From NCBI GenBank assembly GCA_965240325.2, contig OZ251234.1, positions 992,001-1,056,000 on the forward strand: a DNA stretch of 64,000 bases. The letters are read 5' to 3'. Positions 3,252-22,666 of the stretch are shown here, one piece after another. The notes below the pieces were generated by a model. The model was not told the origin of the DNA. It made no database searches and worked only from the letters and a program-made list of their open reading frames with translations. Source of the DNA: Rebecca billardiae RCC1528 (taxonomy: Eukaryota > Protista > Haptophyta). The translations under genes and the position numbers were made by a program. Positions within the stretch are counted from its first letter, which is position 1. Every line of letters starts with the position of its first letter.

Positions 3252-4020
3252 CTAGCTAGTATGGCTAGGAGCTTAGTAAGCAACGCTCGGTTGCTGCAGT
3301 ATACCACTGCTAGTAAGCTAGTTACTACTGCTGCTATACAACTACGACCGTCGCGTCACCGATCACGTTTGCACCGGCCGCCAGTAGCTGTCTGCCCGCA
3401 GCAGCGCGCGGCACGGTTCGACTTATTGGCGCCCGGCGACTCATCATCCGCCGGCTCATCGGCCGTCCGCCCGTCGTCCGGCGCCGGCACATCATTATTC
3501 ATTGTGAACTGTCGTCAACTCAACCTTGCCGCCCAGGTTGCTGGGGCCCCATTGTAATACCGCACACGGCCACAGACAGAGTGAGAGCTAGTCAGTGAGC
3601 AGACTATAAGTAAGTCACTAGCTGGGGTGCAATGAGTAGTCGTCTTACTACGGACTATACTTAGCGAGTTGTGACAGACAGCGTTCACAGTATAGACTCC
3701 GTTGAGACAGACGACTGAGCAGTGAGCTTTGAATGACGGCTACTGCCTACTCGGTCCCGAATGCAGCCGCCGAATAAGTCCGACTGTAGTGATCTACTGC
3801 TTTCGCCTTCGGACAGTCGCGTGATCTGCCGTGATCATATACTCGACATATATAGCGCAGCGACTCGGCTTAGCCTTATTAGGCACTGCTAGCGAGCGCG
3901 CCTCCCGGATTCGGCGGACGAGTGAGTTGTGACGAGTGTGAGGGCCTCGCCCGGCTTTATCGATGCCGTCGTCCCTGAGCACCCACGGCGCGATGCCTGG
4001 CACTCTATCCGCGGCCTCAC

Positions 4021-5251
4021 TCACGGGAAGTCCGGGAAGAGCTTGTAGTGCACCAGCTTGATGCTCACGTACGCCAGCGTGCTCGCCAGCAAGTAGCGGC
4101 CGACGAAGATGTCCACAGACTCGGCGGCCTGCCGCACCGTCTTGGACGCGCCACCCGCCGCGCGCAGCCCGCCGAAGAAGAGGAGGAAGGCGAAGGTCCG
4201 CGTGTCCGACTCTGAGAGGATACGCGCATCCAAACACGCGCAAGAGGGCGTGCGCAACGGCGCATTGTGAGCGCGCGCTCGCGCACGGGCGCCGAGAAGC
4301 ATCCGCGCATCGAGGCGCACGGCGGGCCGGTGAGGCGCTCACCCTGCGCGCGTGCGAGTGTCTCGGACCACACCTCGGGCACCTCCTCTTTGCGCTTGGT
4401 CAGCCGCCGCACGCGCTCCCAGACCGAGCTGGGCTCAGGCTCGGGCGGTGGCTTGGGCTGCAGCGGCTTGGCTGCCGAGTCCCTGCAGCAGGGGGGCGCG
4501 GCGGTGGGGGCTCGCATGCCTGCTCAGCCGGAACGGGCACGAGGACCGCGCGTGGCGCGGCGCGGCGGTGCGCGCACCAGGCCACCCCTCCAACCAGACG
4601 CAGCGGCAGCCCGACGAACAGATCCGCGTACGTGAAGAGCACGGTGATCAGCTTGGTGCTGCCGATCAGTATGAAGTTGGCCGCCACCGAGAACACCACA
4701 CCCGCCACGAACGTCTCGGTCGTCTCGTGCAGAGGAAGGACCCATGAGATGCCGCGCTCGCGGACGAATGGGATGATGGCCTCGTTGATGAAGCTCTCCA
4801 CCACGCACAGCTCCAGCCGGACGCGCAGCAGCCCGCTCGCCACCAGGGGCGCATACTCCGTGTAGCCCTGGCTGCCGATCAGCGCCGCAATAAACGTTTG
4901 CAGAGAGCGGTACACGCCGTCGCTGACGGAGCACACGGGCTGGAAAGTAGATGGGTCGAAGACCGTGCCGGCTTGCGACTGCGCTATCGCAGCCTCCGGC
5001 GGCACAAGCAAGAGCCCGCCACCCAGCGCCGCCGCTGTCGCTGCAGCTGCAAGCTGGGCGTCGCTTGTGCGCGCGTCGCTGCGCGACTCGAGATCGACGA
5101 GCTCGGCGTCCAGCCGAGGCTCCCACGGCCACGATGCGTCGTCCCGCGGCAGTATCATGTGCGCACGCGCGCGGAGGGGAGCCAGCGGCGCCCGTGCCAA
5201 CGGCCGCGCGGAGGCCGCGGCGAACACGCCGATCGCAATCACCGCCGCCAT
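4021..5251 (-). CDS. Hypothetical membrane protein with signal/transit-like N-terminus, possibly plastid-targeted (exons 5251-4578, 4482-4343, 4211-4021)
   Basis: Hydrophobic leader followed by an Ala/Arg-rich segment and several hydrophobic helices. Two GT-AG introns (4483-4577, 4212-4342) link three ORF-track frames in phase. Confidence 0.75.
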
Positions 5252-15022: not shown

Positions 15023-17409
15023 AGGGGGTCCATGACAGCAGCCCATTGATTTGTGATTTTCGACAACCATGCGATTTAGGTGTCTGACGAGCGTGGCGCT
15101 TGCGGAGTCACTTACAAATATGTCCCAGAGCCCAGCCCAGCCGTTGGAAGCACTCAAAACCGACTCCGCGCGCCGTCGCGCGGTCGTGCGCGCACGCCAG
15201 CTGCGCCACTGTGTCACATACAGATTCAGCCAAACGTCAAGGACTTGTTATGGCGGCTAAATGACGGTATGTCGTCGGACTTACTTATTCATAACCGTTG
15301 CAACCCGCCCCAACAAAATTAAGGTGGAATTGCTAAATTTTAGTAGGCATGATGAGTGCGCGTAGCGGTCGGTGAAAAACTACTCCAAGATCGAGCATTT
15401 TACCCATTTAATTAGAGATCCCCTACCCACACATACGCATAGACTTACCCGTTTATATATAATACGGGTGCACTCTCTTATATATATTCATATTGGTGCC
15501 TATATGTGGGTACCGTGTTCAATACTGAGACTGGGTCATCCGAATAGGCGGCCGCCGCCGCGGAGCAGTCACTGCCGCTGCTCATGCCACTCGAACAGTG
15601 CCGCAGCAGGCCCGCACGGGCCTGATGCGGGCGGCGGGCTGCGTGCCGAGGCACACTAGCAAGACCACCTCTGAGCATGCCACCATCCCAACACTCGCAG
15701 GAGAGCCCTCCGGCTCCGCCGTCGAGGCTTGCGTGCGCAGACTGGCAGTCGATTGCCGCCGCCAAGCTTGCCGCGGTCCGTTCGGCGACTTCCAAGCCCG
15801 TACTCTGTGTCACCGGCATCGTCGCCGTTCGTCGTACCCCGGCCCACGCGAGGCTGCCACCGGTTCACCACTACTGCGACGGACTGCGCGCGCTTCGCCA
15901 CGCGCTCGCCCCGAAGCTCCGCCGCTCTCCTCTCGCGCTTGAGCTCGGCGCCGTCGGCAGCCATGGCCGCCCGCTCGGCCGCAGCGCGATCTGTGCCACA
16001 GCACGCGCTGCGCTCGGCTTCGTCGGCGCGCAAGCTGGCGCGCGCAGCGTCGGCGACGGCGCGCGCGGTCGCCTTGCGCGACGAGTCCAGCTCCACCTGC
16101 TGCTCCGAGATGATCGCGTGCTCAGCAGGAGTCACGCGCTGCTCGTGCAGCGGCACCGTCACGCGGCCTGATGCGGAAATGCGCGGCGCGTCAGCGTCGG
16201 GGTGCGAGTCGAGGTCGCGGAAGGGGCAGCTGACGTGGGCGGCGCCCAGCAACTGGTCGTCGGTGTCCAGCTCCGCCAACCTCTCCGCCGCCGACGCGCC
16301 CAGCTTCCGGCTCAGGATGCGCTCCACGTCCTGGCGCTTGCCCTTCGACCACCTGTGCACGGTCATCAGCCAGTTGCCGATCATCTCGAGCCGCGGCGAG
16401 TCGTGGCGCGCCGAGATGCCGTGCACGTCCGCGCAGGCGTGCGCGACCTTCTTGGGCTTCCTCATCCCACCGTCGCCCGCGGTCTGGGCGTACGCCGCGG
16501 TGAACACTCTGACCAACTGCTTGCGCTTCCTCAAGTTCTTCTTGAGCATGAGGTCCACGAGCGTGCGGAGGAGGTCGAGGAGCACGAAGTTGAGCACCGA
16601 TGCGTACCGCGGGTGCGTGCCGGCCACGAAGCGGCAGCCAAAAGTGTGCATCACGTGAATGGCGCGCGCCGCCGCCGCCGTCTCCTCGACCTGCTCCACG
16701 CGGACGTTGATGTCTGGCGGCAGCTCGAGCCTTGACTGCTGCACGCCATCGTGGCCGTCCGCGGAGGAGGTGAGCCCCTCTGCGGTGCTGGCGGGGACCT
16801 CGGGCGGGTCGCACATGTCCATGGACACGCGCACATCATCATCCGCCACGCCCTGGACCTCGTCATGCCCGGCGCGGCGGCCCGCAAGTTGGTCGGCGTC
16901 GAGCGCTCCTTGCGGCCGAGGCGTCGGGGGAGAGTCTGAGCACGAGAGCGCGGTGTCGGGTGAGCGAGAAGGCTGCGTCGAGTCGTTGTCGATGTCCACC
17001 CCACCGCGTAGGTCATGTTCGTCTCCGCGTAGGTCGCCAGCACGTGCTGCTAGGACTCGCTCCTTGGTCGCGAGCAGCACACGTTGAGCACGCAGATGCA
17101 AATTATGAAGCACGAGCTTCGGTTGAACCACGACTCCCAGCGAGAGCCCGGTCCGCACGAGTCATGGCTACCCGTCCGCAGCCGCCCAGCCGCTTGACGA
17201 GGCGCCTGCACCGAGGTGGGTGCGCCCAATGGCGAGCGGACGGCCGTCGATGAGGGCCATCAGCCTCGCCGACCCCGTTCAGAGCTCCGCTCCCGCGCCG
17301 GGGCCAGCCGAGCGCGGATTTGGAATCTGCCGATCGCGAAAACCCGCCGAACAAGTTCTGAATGGAAAAGAAAAAAAATCAAAACTCAATTTAATCTGAT
17401 GGACCCCCT
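15023..17409. mobile_element. Non-autonomous TIR DNA transposon with 9-bp TSD (Mutator-like)
   Basis: Termini AGGGGGTCCAT (15023-15033) and ATGGACCCCCT (17399-17409), with weaker internal extension (ATTGATTTGTGATTTT vs ATTGAGTTTTGATTTT). Identical flanks ACGGGCTGT at 15014-15022 and 17410-17418. Confidence 0.8.
15656..16822 (-). CDS. Orphan ORF inside the TIR element (open frame extends to 17158; start uncertain)
   Basis: About 390-500 codons open, with a Lys/Arg-rich middle and a coiled-coil-like C-terminus. No DDE motif recognised. Confidence 0.5.
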   Translation of the reverse strand: MDMCDPPEVPASTAEGLTSSADGHDGVQQSRLELPPDINVRVEQVEETAAAARAIHVMHTFGCRFVAGTHPRYASVLNFVLLDLLRTLVDLMLKKNLRKRKQLVRVFTAAYAQTAGDGGMRKPKKVAHACADVHGISARHDSPRLEMIGNWLMTVHRWSKGKRQDVERILSRKLGASAAERLAELDTDDQLLGAAHVSCPFRDLDSHPDADAPRISASGRVTVPLHEQRVTPAEHAIISEQQVELDSSRKATARAVADAARASLRADEAERSACCGTDRAAAERAAMAADGAELKRERRAAELRGERVAKRAQSVAVVVNRWQPRVGRGTTNGDDAGDTEYGLGSRRTDRGKLGGGNRLPVCARKPRRRSRRALLRVLGWWHAQRWSC

Positions 17410-17449
17410 ACGGGCTGTTCCTGCCATAATCCCGGCCAGACTGGCTGAC

Positions 17450-20400
17450 TCCGTCAGAGACTGAACACCTCAAAGATGTGCGGGTGCCGTTTCTGGACGC
17501 TTCTAGCCTTGATCTCCTGAACATTTGTAGGGGAGATGAGTTTAGTCAGTCGACTGACTAAACTTTTTCTTCAATCAAGGCTCCTCACGACTAGGCGCCG
17601 TCTTGCACGAAATCCCTATCCTCTCGTCTGGCCACGGCCCTTGGTCTGGCGGTCTTGCATCAAATCCTGGACTCGCGAGGGCAAGGGGTGGGCCCTCTAC
17701 CTACGGCCGCCAAACCGGTAATACGCGTTCTGAGCCCGGTCTGGTTGCGGGCGGCCCGGGGCCGCCGCGCCCCGGCTGCCGGGGCGGCGACTCGGGGAGG
17801 CGAGCGTTGGCGCGCGCCCGCCGTGGCCGCGGCGGCAGCGGGGTCGTTGGGCCATCCCAGGGGTATCTGAGCCTCTCGACAAGGGGCCGTGGCTGCGCCT
17901 CGCGTGGGCTGTACTGCACGCGGGCAGCCGACACGAATGCGATGCGCCATCCAAGCGCGAGCCCGAGAGCTTTCGCGACACGGGTGCTGCGCGAGCACGT
18001 CTGAAGGAGCGGGCAAGGTCTCGAGAGGAAGCAGGGAGACCACAGAAGTGCTAGCTCGCAACGACAGTCAGGGAGCGCGAGCCGCCCCGCTGCGCTGCCT
18101 GAGCCGGTCGCCCCACGGGCACGGCCACGGGCCACGCGTGGCGGGCAAACGTGACTGCCGCGCGGCAAGGCTTGGTGAGTGTGTACATGCTTCAAGTGGC
18201 TGGTCGCTGGTAGAGCTGCTGCATCCCAATCGCGAGCAGCCAGTAACAGCGACTCGGCCGCGCCGCCGCGGCCGTGCTCCGCAGTTCTGGTGCCCGCGCG
18301 GAACTGACGGTCACGGTTGCGCACCCGCGGGCGGCGAGACCAGTCAGTGGGCCGGCTCTGCCGCCGTCCCTGAGCGTGACCCGCAGTGGCGTCGCCGGGC
18401 TTGCAGGGGGGTCTAAGCCGGCCACCCGCCCGAACCGGAGCCTGGCACGACCGTATCCGGCCCGCGCCGCCGCGCGCTGCCACAGTGGCCGGTGGCGGTG
18501 GCACGCGTCGGGCCCGCGCAGCCCGCGCGGCCCGCGCCGCCGCGCGGCCCGCGAGCGCGGGCCTCATCCGACGAATAAGACTGACGAGTATCACGAACGA
18601 ATATGGCGCCAATGCGGGATAGTGCGACTGGAGTGCTGAGCCGTGACTGACTACGTCATGCCTACCAGCCGTACGTACATCCCCGCCCACTATTCGGATG
18701 GTAGCCCGCGGTCGGCGGCGGCGAGCCGCCGATGATTGTCCCGCCGGTCGCTGTGACATCCTTCCACTTACGCCAGGTGAAGCGCAGGCCGATGACCGAC
18801 TGGAAGTCGGTGAACAGGACGAGCTGGTGCGGGCTCTCGGCGAGCGTCGTGGCGGGAGAGAAGATCTCGGCGTAGTTGTCCGACGCGTTGCCGTTCAGCG
18901 GAGCGATCGAGAAGAAGGGCCAGCCGGGGGCGAGCGGCAAGCTCGCGTGAGATGCGAGCTCGAGCTCGTACCGGCCGCGCAGCCAGCGGCCCAGGCGGTC
19001 CTCGGCGAAGAGGTCGATGACGGCAGCATCGTACGCGGTGGCATCGACCTGGACCGATGCGCGCTCGGCTGCGTGCAAGCCTCGGCAGTGCGCGACGACG
19101 CGCGTGAGCAGCCGATCGAAGATCGCCGCCTGCTGCTGCTGGCGGACGCGAATGTGCATCGGCTCCCGCCACAGGAACTCACGGTACCGCGCGACGAGGT
19201 TGTGCACAGCCTCCGCCGGCGGGCGGTACAGCTTCGCGCCGTGCTCGATGGCGACGATGGTGACGTGGCGATACACCTTACTGCTGGCGAGGCAGCCCGC
19301 GACACGGCGCTCGGACTCGACGCACGCCGCAACCAGATCGGCGTCCGCGGCGATGCCAATCTCATCGCGCCCTGCGCGGCGCGCGCGGGCACGCGCGCAG
19401 GACGCGCGTCAACACGGGCGGCGGGGGGGAGCGGGCACGGCGCGCGCGCAGCGGGATCCGATCGTACCGAGATCGAGCACGTGCTCGTCCGCCTCCCCGA
19501 GCAAGCACGGCCGCAGCGGGTAGCCGCGCTGCTGCCCGTCCTCCGCAGCCCCTGTCGTCGTCGGCAGCACGATGCCGCCGTCCGGCTGCTTCCAGGCCTT
19601 CAGGCCGACACCGAACTCGAATGGCATGCGGGCGGTCGGGAGCTGCGCGATGACCTCCTCGGGTGGCTCGGTCAGATTCATGTTCGCCACATGCAGCACG
19701 TTGCGCTTGGCCTTGAACGGCTGCGGCTCGGACTCGCCCTGCCTGGCATCACAGACGACGGGGCGGACGACGACACGCGGTGTTGGCGCGCCGCGGGTAT
19801 GCGCGCGCAGGGAGGGATCGCGGGCGGGGCGGCGCACCTCGGGCGCTTGAACGCGGTCCATGCATTCACGAAGAAGTCCAGTGCGCCCCCGCGCGCGATG
19901 AACTCCGCAAGGTTCTTCCACACCATCACCTTGCCATGCACCGTCTCGACCTCGATCTCCTCCTCCTTCCAGTTGCCGACGTGCTCGTAGACCTCCGCAG
20001 GGTGGTAGTCTGCGGTGCGCGTCTTGCCAGGCAAGTCCTCCACGAAGTAGAACCACTTTACCATGAGGGTCACTGACCCCGCGACGACTTCTTGACGACG
20101 CGGCGCACCTGCGCGAGCCCGGCGCGCTCCGAAGGCCTGCCGTTCTTCTGCAGCCACTGCACGACGACATGGTCTCCGATTCCGATATTGATGCCGCGCC
20201 AGATGACGCCGACATTCCGCAATCGTCCTCCCCGCGTGGCGGCGGTGACGAGCTCCGGCGCGGTGGCCGGCGGGAGCTCCCCGCTCCGTCCATGACTTCG
20301 ACAAACCGCGAGGGGCCGTTCGACCGGCGCTCAGCCGGAACGGAGCGACTCAACCAGGCTCGGCGGTTGCTCAAAAACCTATTCATGCCCTCCACCGCCC

Positions 20401-20517
20401 CTGGTGCAGGCCGGGCGTTGATTGGCCGTCGGTTGCTAGTGCAGTTTTAAGAAAATCTCGTGGAACGTGGCCGGAAAAGGCACCCGCACATCTTTGAGGT
20501 GCTCGGTCTGCCACGGA
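17450..20517. mobile_element. TIR DNA element carrying a BAH-domain gene
   Basis: 23-bp perfect inverted core CACCTCAAAGATGTGCGGGTGCC (17466-17488 and 20479-20501) within an imperfect ~50-bp TIR running from TCCGT to ACGGA. Candidate TSD CTGAC (17445-17449 and 20518-20522), or ACT if the ends are 1 bp further in. Confidence 0.75.
18662..20300 (-). pseudogene. BAH-domain protein gene with two introns (19743-19837, 19372-19467) and a frameshift near 20071
   Basis: Reconstructed sequence GINIGIGDHVVVQW...LAQVRRVVKKSSRGQ/VTLMVKWFYFVEDLP...HPAEVY...EEIEVETVHGKVMV...FFV follows the BAH pattern. GT-AG introns join the downstream exons in phase. The start codon is unclear. Confidence 0.65.
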
Positions 20518-22666
20518 CTGACTGAGTGAAGTAGTGAGCTGTTCGGGCTGTTGCCAGTTACTCGCACTCGGACTACTGCCACTCTGAGTCACTCACACTT
20601 CACAGTCTCACTCTCAGCACGGCTCACTGGCAGCCGGTCAGCCGCCACCGCGCACTCGGCGCCGCAGGCCGCCGACTGGCTCCGCGCGGGTCACGCGGGA
20701 CTCCGCGGTGCCACTCACACTGAAACGGTGCCAGTCAGCCGAACTCAATTACCCTGGTCAATACTACCGTGGACCGACTCAGACTGGCGACTCCGGGACC
20801 GAAGTAGTCACTGTCATCCCGATTCCCGAGCCGCTTCCGGCTTCCCGCTTCGGCGGACCCCGGCGGCGGGCGAATTGCGGCACCGGGTACTCGGTGTCCG
20901 AGACCGTGCCAGTGGCAGTCAGAGCCGAGTGTCGTCAGTTCCACGCGCCGGACATCGGCCAGCGCAGAAGTTGGTCGCCAACCAAGGCGCAACCAGCGCC
21001 ATCGTCACGGTAGAGTAGACAAGCCTCGCGGCAGATTCAGCTTCGCTTGTACGGCCGCTGATGATGCTGTGAGCCGTCAGGCTGCCGGTTCGCACAGCCT
21101 CAGCACCAGCGGTTCTCCTTCCCGGAGCGCGGCGCCATGACTGCCTAATCGCAGCATGCCGAACACCAGCGGCAGGCCAGCTCGCGCCTCCGGCGGCGGC
21201 TGTCGCAGCGGGCTGTTTGCTCGCCTGAGGTTGTCCGTCGTCACCCAGGTGTCGATGCATGCAAAGCGCGCCGAGCGCATGGTGAGGGCACGTTGCCGCT
21301 TCTCGACGCGTCGGACGGGAGGTGGTGCGTCACGCTTTGGCCGTGCACGAGGCGGCGTCTCAAAACGTGCTTGCAGCTCTGCTCGCGCGCGTTCCATGTC
21401 GGGGATTGCACCGAGGGAGGCCAGCGCCCAGGTTGGGAGTGAGGGTGCACTCAGCACTCACGAACGCCGGTTGGATCTGGAGCCTCGACGGGTGGTTGGA
21501 CCCTACCCAGCCGTACCCGGCCGGGGCGGTTGCTGATTGGTCCAAACCCTCCTCCCAACCGGCAAGTGATTCGTCTGGACGCAAAGGTCTTTTCGTCCAA
21601 GCTAGAAAGCTCGGTACTGACGAACGGTGAGTACCCAGACACTACCCATTTGATGGCCAACTGAGTAAAAGCAATGTTGGTGCCAGTGTCCTAATCATCC
21701 AATCGGGGGGTGGGCCCTTGGTCCACCCCAGTACAATTGAACATCTCCAGTGATCTTCGACGGAGGGAGATTGCAGCTCCGACCGATGTTAAAAAGCCTC
21801 CTACCAATCAACTGGTCGTTACTTCCGCCACGCACTCAAACAACAATCAAATCACCATTCATCATTGGCCCTTCATCATTCATCACAATGTTCATAATCT
21901 ATTAGATCCACTTCAAAGTGAATACGTTCAAGACGATGGTCGGGCGCGGCGAGAAATGAAACGGCGTTCCGCCCAAGTCCACACCAAGGGACCTCCCTTG
22001 TCCACACACACGAACGGGTGCGCGCCTCGCGTCAGCGGCTTAGCGCCGAGGGTCGGGGCAACGCCGCTGCCGTCGCCCTCAGTGTCGCCGCCGCTGCGTT
22101 CCGCCGCCTGCGCAGCGAGGAGCTTAGGTGTGCACGCGCTTCCTCCGTTCCTCGACGCCAGCAGCCCAGTAGCAGCGGCAGCTGCGACCGCGCGACGCGG
22201 GTGGTGGCATCCAGCATATCCACGGACGCGACCGAGAATTCACGCGCTCACGCTCACGACGCACGTTCTGGACTCTTGAAGTCCTACATGGCGGCACGGA
22301 GTGGTACTTGAAGGACCTGTCTATGTACGCGCGCGTGCGTTGCACGTCATACGGCCGCAAGTTCTGGCTCATGTGCGTGTTGACTGGGCGCGTCGACTTG
22401 TCGGTACTCAGTAATGCAGCTGTGCGCGCGCGCTGTCGACGGCGACGGCTGTGTGGAACCACTTGCGGACTCGCCCGACGGCCAGGTGCTGGGGGCTACA
22501 CTGGTGCCGAGCAGCGTGCAGCGCGCCGCTCGGGCCGTGCACCGCGAAGGCCAATGCGCTGTTCGCCTTTGCGTCGGCGCAGCAGGACGGCGTGCCACGC
22601 TCGACTGTACCGAGTATGGTAGCGATTCAGCGCAGCTGCGCAGCAGCACATTTGTTCGTTCGAACG

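Follow-up and report, generated by a model that had tools for sequence, protein, structure and literature searches.

Cut-and-paste transposons of eukaryotes described before Spy (2014) all make target-site duplications, because their transposases cut the target DNA with a stagger (PMC4122938). Spy, known from invertebrates and belonging to the PIF/Harbinger-ISL2EU-Spy superfamily, is the published eukaryotic cut-and-paste group that makes no duplication: it uses a DDE transposase, has the end consensus GGANNNNG and inserts precisely at AAA|TTT (PMC4122938). The element described here lies in a stretch of 64,000 nucleotides, hereafter the window, from the haptophyte alga Rebecca billardiae RCC1528 (assembly GCA_965240325.2, contig OZ251234.1, positions 992,001 to 1,056,000 of the forward strand). 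It is 3036 bp long, contains a single gene, and belongs to a family that shares with Spy the inverted repeats and the absence of a target-site duplication. Contrary to Spy, the algal family has no detected DDE transposase, its target is a weak GC-rich dyad, and its ends are of the CACC type instead of GGANNNNG.

The window copy is interpreted here, with moderate confidence, as a gene-disabled member of a very young family of DNA transposons with CACC ends and no target duplication, moved in trans by the protein of its own gene, supplied by an older copy on contig C33 of the assembly. The ancestral element, of about 3.1 kb, encodes one protein from three exons, about 474 residues long and consisting of an N-terminal BAH-like domain, a linker, and a C-terminal orphan domain of about 215 residues that is known only from a few environmental eukaryotic sequences. 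The 18 young copies derive from one descendant in which a 40-bp deletion at a microhomology removed the start codon and two additional bases shifted the frame of exon 1. Since all of them are gene-disabled, the family spread after the loss of the full protein, and the young copies would have been mobilized in trans. The C33 copy, with damaged ends and an intact gene, would be the most likely supplier, and its protein is the simplest source because it is the only one encoded by the ancestral element. In this mechanism the BAH-like domain is predicted to tether the protein to chromatin, the orphan domain would recognize or process the element ends, and the protein may act either as the catalyst or as an end-binding or chromatin-tethering partner of another enzyme.

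A comparable situation is that of Ds in the Ac/Ds system and of the internally deleted P elements, where a burst of copies also combines intact ends with a broken gene and one intact-gene copy could supply the protein in trans. Ac/Ds and P elements have known transposases and make 8-bp duplications. In the algal family, on the other hand, the role of the protein is only a candidate one, and the copy with the intact gene has damaged ends.

The genome searched comprises 72 Mb in 41 contigs. The search for the repeat that the earlier note had proposed recovered the 23-bp core 37 times with up to two mismatches, against no occurrence of a reversed control, and nearly all of these occurrences form inverted pairs with a spacing of 3006-3014 bp. 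The 100 bp at the gene-proximal end are found exactly 19 times, in the 18 full-size copies and once in an older one. The full-size copies are spread over 15 contigs with unrelated flanks, and the 14 that were compared in full show a mean divergence of 0.11%, four of them being identical, so the mobile family suspected in the earlier note is supported. Among the young copies, a subgroup of four shares a deletion of 18 bp together with insertions of 3 bp and 8 bp inside exon 3, and the copy on C35 carries an internal deletion in exon 1.

An origin of the copies by segmental duplication or assembly redundancy, instead of transposition, is extremely improbable, and was ruled out by the flank comparison: the other copies, on 15 contigs, have both flanks unrelated up to the same two terminal bases. 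The one observation in line with it comes from the copies on C29 (L019; G000:C29:1,145,169-1,149,697) and C34 (L025/L026; C34:355,065-359,593), which share at least 1500 bp of right flank with 100% identity. On the left, the flanks of these two copies show no relation from the very first base beyond the element, and the C29 copy has a T instead of a C at the left end, where the flanks diverge. The pair suggests that a rearrangement or duplication broke precisely where the element ends.

The alignment of 14 copies in one orientation, each with 1.5 kb of flank, showed that the homology is limited exactly by CACC... and ...GGTG. As the homology starts and stops at these ends, the element of the window occupies positions 17466-20501, with the following features inside and around it:

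17466-20501, minus strand (the strand of the gene): whole element, 3036 bp, delimited by the 14-copy homology limits; one of the 18 full-size young copies
17466-17488, plus strand: terminal inverted repeat of the gene-distal end, perfect over 23 bp and continuing imperfectly inward as far as about 17500
20479-20501, minus strand: terminal inverted repeat of the gene-proximal end, 23 bp perfect
19838-20280, minus strand: remnant of exon 1, BAH-like, without start codon and frameshifted, from the pairwise alignment with the older copy (L069)
19743-19837, minus strand: predicted intron 1, 95 nt, GT..AG, with splice sites identical in L069
19468-19742, minus strand: exon 2, linker, matching the environmental proteins P0012 and P0003
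19372-19467, minus strand: predicted intron 2, 96 nt, GT..AG, with splice sites identical in L069
18662-19371, minus strand: exon 3, orphan domain of about 215 amino acids with ten relatives, and stop codon TAG at 18664-18662
17489-18661, no strand: non-coding 1.2 kb downstream of the gene, with indels and substitutions relative to L069
17539-17564, no strand: perfect palindrome of 26 bp, 74 bp inside the gene-distal end, kept in L069 and absent from the sister family
17450-17465, no strand: host flank beyond the element, forming the left half of the dyad at the target, from the flank comparison
20502-20522, no strand: host flank beyond the element, forming the right half of the dyad at the target and including CTGAC, from the flank comparison

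Repeat detection in the window returned arms at 17450-17496 and 20471-20517, with 85% complementarity and the 23-bp perfect core inside them. The terminal inverted repeat was initially described as about 50 bp long; its perfect core stands, with an imperfect inward continuation to about 35 bp, but its outward extension does not, as the 17 bp outside the core and the CTGAC beyond them are different in every copy compared. The distance to the previous element, put at about 30 bp, is in fact about 50 bp, since the neighboring repeat family ends at about 17411-17418. Window positions 17300-17418 are the terminus of this other family, which has at least 40 copies with 91-100% identity.

A target duplication was looked for at 18 independent insertions by comparing, for each length k from 1 to 9, the k bases directly before the element with the k bases directly after it. 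The flanks agreed in 0, 3, 0, 1, 0, 0, 0, 0, and 0 of them, respectively, and no duplication length of 1-9 bp is consistent over the 18 insertions. The CTGAC motif formerly taken as a candidate duplication must be discarded, as it sits 17 bp outside the true ends and the 18 junctions show no consistent repeat of 1-9 bp. The two flanks tend instead to be the reverse complement of each other, with 124 matches within 20 bp over the 18 sites, against 100.8 +/- 8.0 for left and right flanks combined across copies (p 0.002). Symmetry is most extreme in the window copy, at 13 of 20 positions, and this dyad symmetry of its target DNA is the reason for the apparent repeat of 47 bp. Bases -3 to +3 at the 18 sites are G/C-rich and variable, unlike the AAA|TTT target of Spy. 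As far as the sequences of the insertion sites tell, the family inserts into weakly palindromic DNA with zero target bases duplicated, and both properties together suggest that the target is attacked symmetrically and without a stagger. The flanks of the window copy are unique on the right side and, on the left side, for the last ~50 bp.

A sister family with inverted repeats was found in the same genome. Its elements measure 2425 bp, with a variant of 3046 bp, and are represented by at least ten distinct insertions (L061:3945-6371, at G000:C1:192,944-195,370; also L051-L060 and L067). Their ends are of the CACC type and begin with CACCACGACG, also given as CACCACGACGATTCCC, and no target duplication was found at any of the 10 sites compared.

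The multi-exon gene that had been recognized inside the element is indeed present, on the minus strand. The reference for its structure is the older copy on C33 (L069:3354-6441, at G000:C33:368,353-371,440), which is 96% identical over the aligned body and is the only copy in the assembly with an intact gene. Its three exons (3601-4067, 4163-4437, and 4534-5216) sum to 1425 nt in frame, that is, 474 codons and a stop. The ends of this copy are altered: one has a G for C at the first base, and the other lacks its last 4 bases and contains an insertion of 6 bp, damage that probably makes it immobile. The splice model is supported by the identical, in-frame splice sites of L069 and by the environmental proteins P0003 and P0012, in which the exon-2 sequence is joined directly to the exon-3 domain. 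The matches of exon 2 cover residues 4-65 of P0012 (E 3e-10) and 22-86 of P0003 (E 9e-6).

Compared with L069, the window copy and all other young copies have lost 40 bp, including the ATG, at 20280/20281. The deleted stretch is flanked in L069 by CGGAG microhomology. The young copies additionally contain two extra bases (CG) at 20083-20084, as a result of which translation of the BAH-like region stops after its first half, at a TGA in positions 20070-20072. The BAH-like domain, thought to be complete in the window copy, is thus split into halves in different frames and lacks the start codon, and a gene broken at its 5' end cannot make the full protein envisaged earlier. The genome search with the intact exon 1 found it in a single frame only at C33, every other copy giving two pieces in different frames; L069 is the one copy in which the check proposed in the earlier note, for an intact BAH-like gene in other copies, has a positive outcome. 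An internal ATG at 20064 leaves the young copies a frame of 403 codons across both splice junctions, from which a product lacking the N-terminal half of the BAH-like domain is possible.

The exons appear more constrained than the rest of the element. When L069 is compared with the window copy, 1423 bp of exon hold 22 substitutions and 2 indels, against 50 substitutions in 1574 bp and 14 indels in the non-coding remainder (p 0.004 and 0.005, respectively, versus the exons). The non-coding region downstream of the gene (17489-18661) contains ten indels relative to L069, most of them not multiples of 3, and its substitution density is twice that of the exons. This pattern favors that the exons were under constraint after the split from L069. 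The ratio of nonsynonymous to synonymous substitution rates (dN/dS) among the young copies themselves would be meaningless at 0.11% divergence.

Sequence searches and fold predictions of the protein were run exon by exon. The exon-3 domain has ten relatives among 1.84 billion representative sequences, with E values from 4e-34 to 3e-4 and 30-40% identity. Their sources are in all cases short contigs, environmental or from read archives, and no name is informative, one being annotated as 'hypothetical protein'. They align over the whole 215 residues (alignment A1, 12 sequences), and the conserved motifs are GW.FF, YAEI.SP.T, LFTDF, and RRKW. The AlphaFold model of the domain, built from this alignment, is of fairly good confidence, with a predicted local distance difference test score (pLDDT) of 78.7 and a predicted template modeling score (pTM) of 0.76. 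The Foldseek comparison suggested in the earlier note for this C-terminal region gave no neighbor in the PDB (best E 0.24) and no match in BFVD, and a VIA-align search against 48,161 chains reached a best Z of 2.8. These blank searches mean that no match was found, and are no proof of a new fold. Pfam recognized no family in any of the 12 members of the alignment, and the ESM Atlas gave no usable match for the domain. Pfam likewise found no family and no transposase in the open pieces of the window copy, in agreement with the earlier impression that no transposase is visible, and a DDE transposase was detected neither by Pfam in the exons nor by the fold searches with the exon-3 model. Homologue searches with P0003, with alignment A2, and with exon 1 (word-indexed) returned self matches or nothing, and two scans of metagenome contigs and one of viral contigs gave no relative.

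Exon 1 likely adopts a BAH fold. In the ESM Atlas, which is based on a protein language model, BAH is found in 25 of the 30 nearest clusters, with a score of 0.94 and 207 shared features. The alignment of exon 1 with three host BAH domains by hhalign covers 77 columns and is weak (probability 7.6%, P 0.0046), with the motifs GD.V strand, WFYF.ED, EVYE, and VHGKVMV following the canonical BAH order. Folding of exon 1 as a single sequence failed (pLDDT 36). The only profile match on the protein is a sub-threshold one to Terminase_6C, an RNase H-like nuclease domain, at L069:3853-4014 (exon 1 residues 85-138; E 0.013, 15.9 bits versus a cut-off of 22.6), and was taken as chance.

Regarding the origin of the gene, neither exon 1 nor the exon-3 domain has a copy in the 72-Mb genome outside these elements and their decayed relatives, and no parental host gene was found there for either domain. 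The Pfam BAH profile detects only three host genes in the genome, which are unrelated. Remains of the gene are found in the sister family, which holds a 430-bp piece of exon 3 with 74% nucleotide identity, decayed and with stops. An isolated fragment on C31 (L066:4757-5542) covers exon 2 over its second half and exon 3 over its first 60%, with an intron of ~99 nt still in place, and shows 64-89% amino-acid identity. The recent capture of a host gene at the DNA level, one of the origins first considered, is unlikely because the genome shows neither a host copy of the gene nor a longer partner element. Taken with the sister family and the constraint on the exons, this favors a gene that belongs to the element lineage and was functional until recently.

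The capture scenario would imply that a non-autonomous element took up a host gene with its introns in the manner of a Pack-MULE, the gene being idle in the life of the element. It would account for the introns kept at the DNA level, also in the L066 fragment, for the lack of a transposase in the element, for the relatives of the C-terminal domain in other eukaryotic samples, and for the decay of the gene in the young copies. However, besides the missing parental gene, the gene takes up everything that the ancestral element can code for, a remnant of the gene is held by a sister family with the same end type, and its exons were under constraint after the split from L069, so that this scenario is given a low probability. 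The likeness to Pack-MULEs consists of an inverted-repeat element with an interior that resembles a cellular gene with introns. The algal element differs from them in having no parental gene, no 9-bp duplication, and no long inverted repeats of the Mutator type, and in sharing its gene with a sister family.

Several results weigh against a transposon moved by its own protein as proposed above. Only a P and two G residues are invariant among the 12 aligned exon-3 sequences, leaving no catalytic signature. An invariant acidic triad is lacking, as is a signature of histidine, tyrosine, or serine, which argues against a transposase of the classical kind. The exon-3 model has no fold match to a transposase, recombinase, nuclease, or RNase H-like protein. 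The Pfam BAH profile (PF01426), whose application by HMMER had been recommended, does not match the intact exon 1 of L069 even at E 10, and the comparison of exon 1 with the sequences of solved structures gave only spurious polyubiquitin repeats. The claim that the element carries a chromatin reader is thus only plausible: the language-model call and the weak alignment in the right motif order speak for it, while Pfam, the solved structures, and the homologue search were blank. Furthermore, the three-exon splice model is a prediction; the dN/dS of L069 versus the young copies, 0.64 on 22 changes, is not significantly below 1; and that of the sister-family fragment, 0.80 with stops, is neutral. 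The zero duplication, finally, is read from the flank comparison; neither genome searches with the flanks nor local flank-versus-flank BLAST found a paralogous empty site for the window copy.

Some of these points would fit a different role for the gene. The protein could be accessory cargo, a chromatin reader that steers insertion or helps to escape silencing, as the earlier note suggested, with the mobilizing enzyme encoded elsewhere, for example by an element of this genome with CA/CAC-type ends. This is possible, although less probable than mobilization by the protein itself. The language-model BAH call for exon 1, the orphan domain without catalytic motif or enzyme-like fold, and the spread of all young copies without the full protein are in line with it, and the CAC-type termini recall those of the CACTA/Mirage/Chapaev/Transib group, which also has short inverted repeats starting with 5'-CAC. 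Members of this group encode a large DDE transposase and make duplications of 2-5 bp, whereas the algal family shows no duplication and no detected DDE transposase. In addition, no element with these ends bears another gene: the gene-proximal 100 bp always occur in the 3-kb form at their 19 positions in the genome, and a genome search with close variants of the 16-base end, leaving out one inverted pair on C21, turned up no longer element.

Mobilization by the element's own protein can be extended to a more tentative proposal, held with low confidence. The 474-residue protein may be a new eukaryotic transposase or recombinase that inserts CACC-ended elements bluntly into weakly palindromic DNA, in which case the family, the sister family, and the environmental relatives would represent an undescribed superfamily. 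The two algal families include 28 insertions with clean ends, no duplication, and no recognizable transposase, and their only gene encodes a protein without family assignment. If this protein moves the element, both the insertion chemistry and the superfamily would be new. If it is an accessory chromatin reader, the family would be a rare case of a DNA transposon with its own histone-reader module. Should the BAH call hold, the closest parallel would be the chromoviruses, as mobile elements that also encode their own histone-reader module. In chromoviruses, the reader is fused to an integrase of the retroviral type; the algal family is a DNA element with an unrelated protein. The system looks testable, with one natural intact gene, 18 near-identical substrates, and a 23-bp end sequence.

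The inverted pair on C21 mentioned above (G000:C21:536,406-539,715) consists of two copies of the 16-mer CAGCTCAAAGTTGTGC, two bases off the family end, placed 3.3 kb apart, and could represent a third related family.

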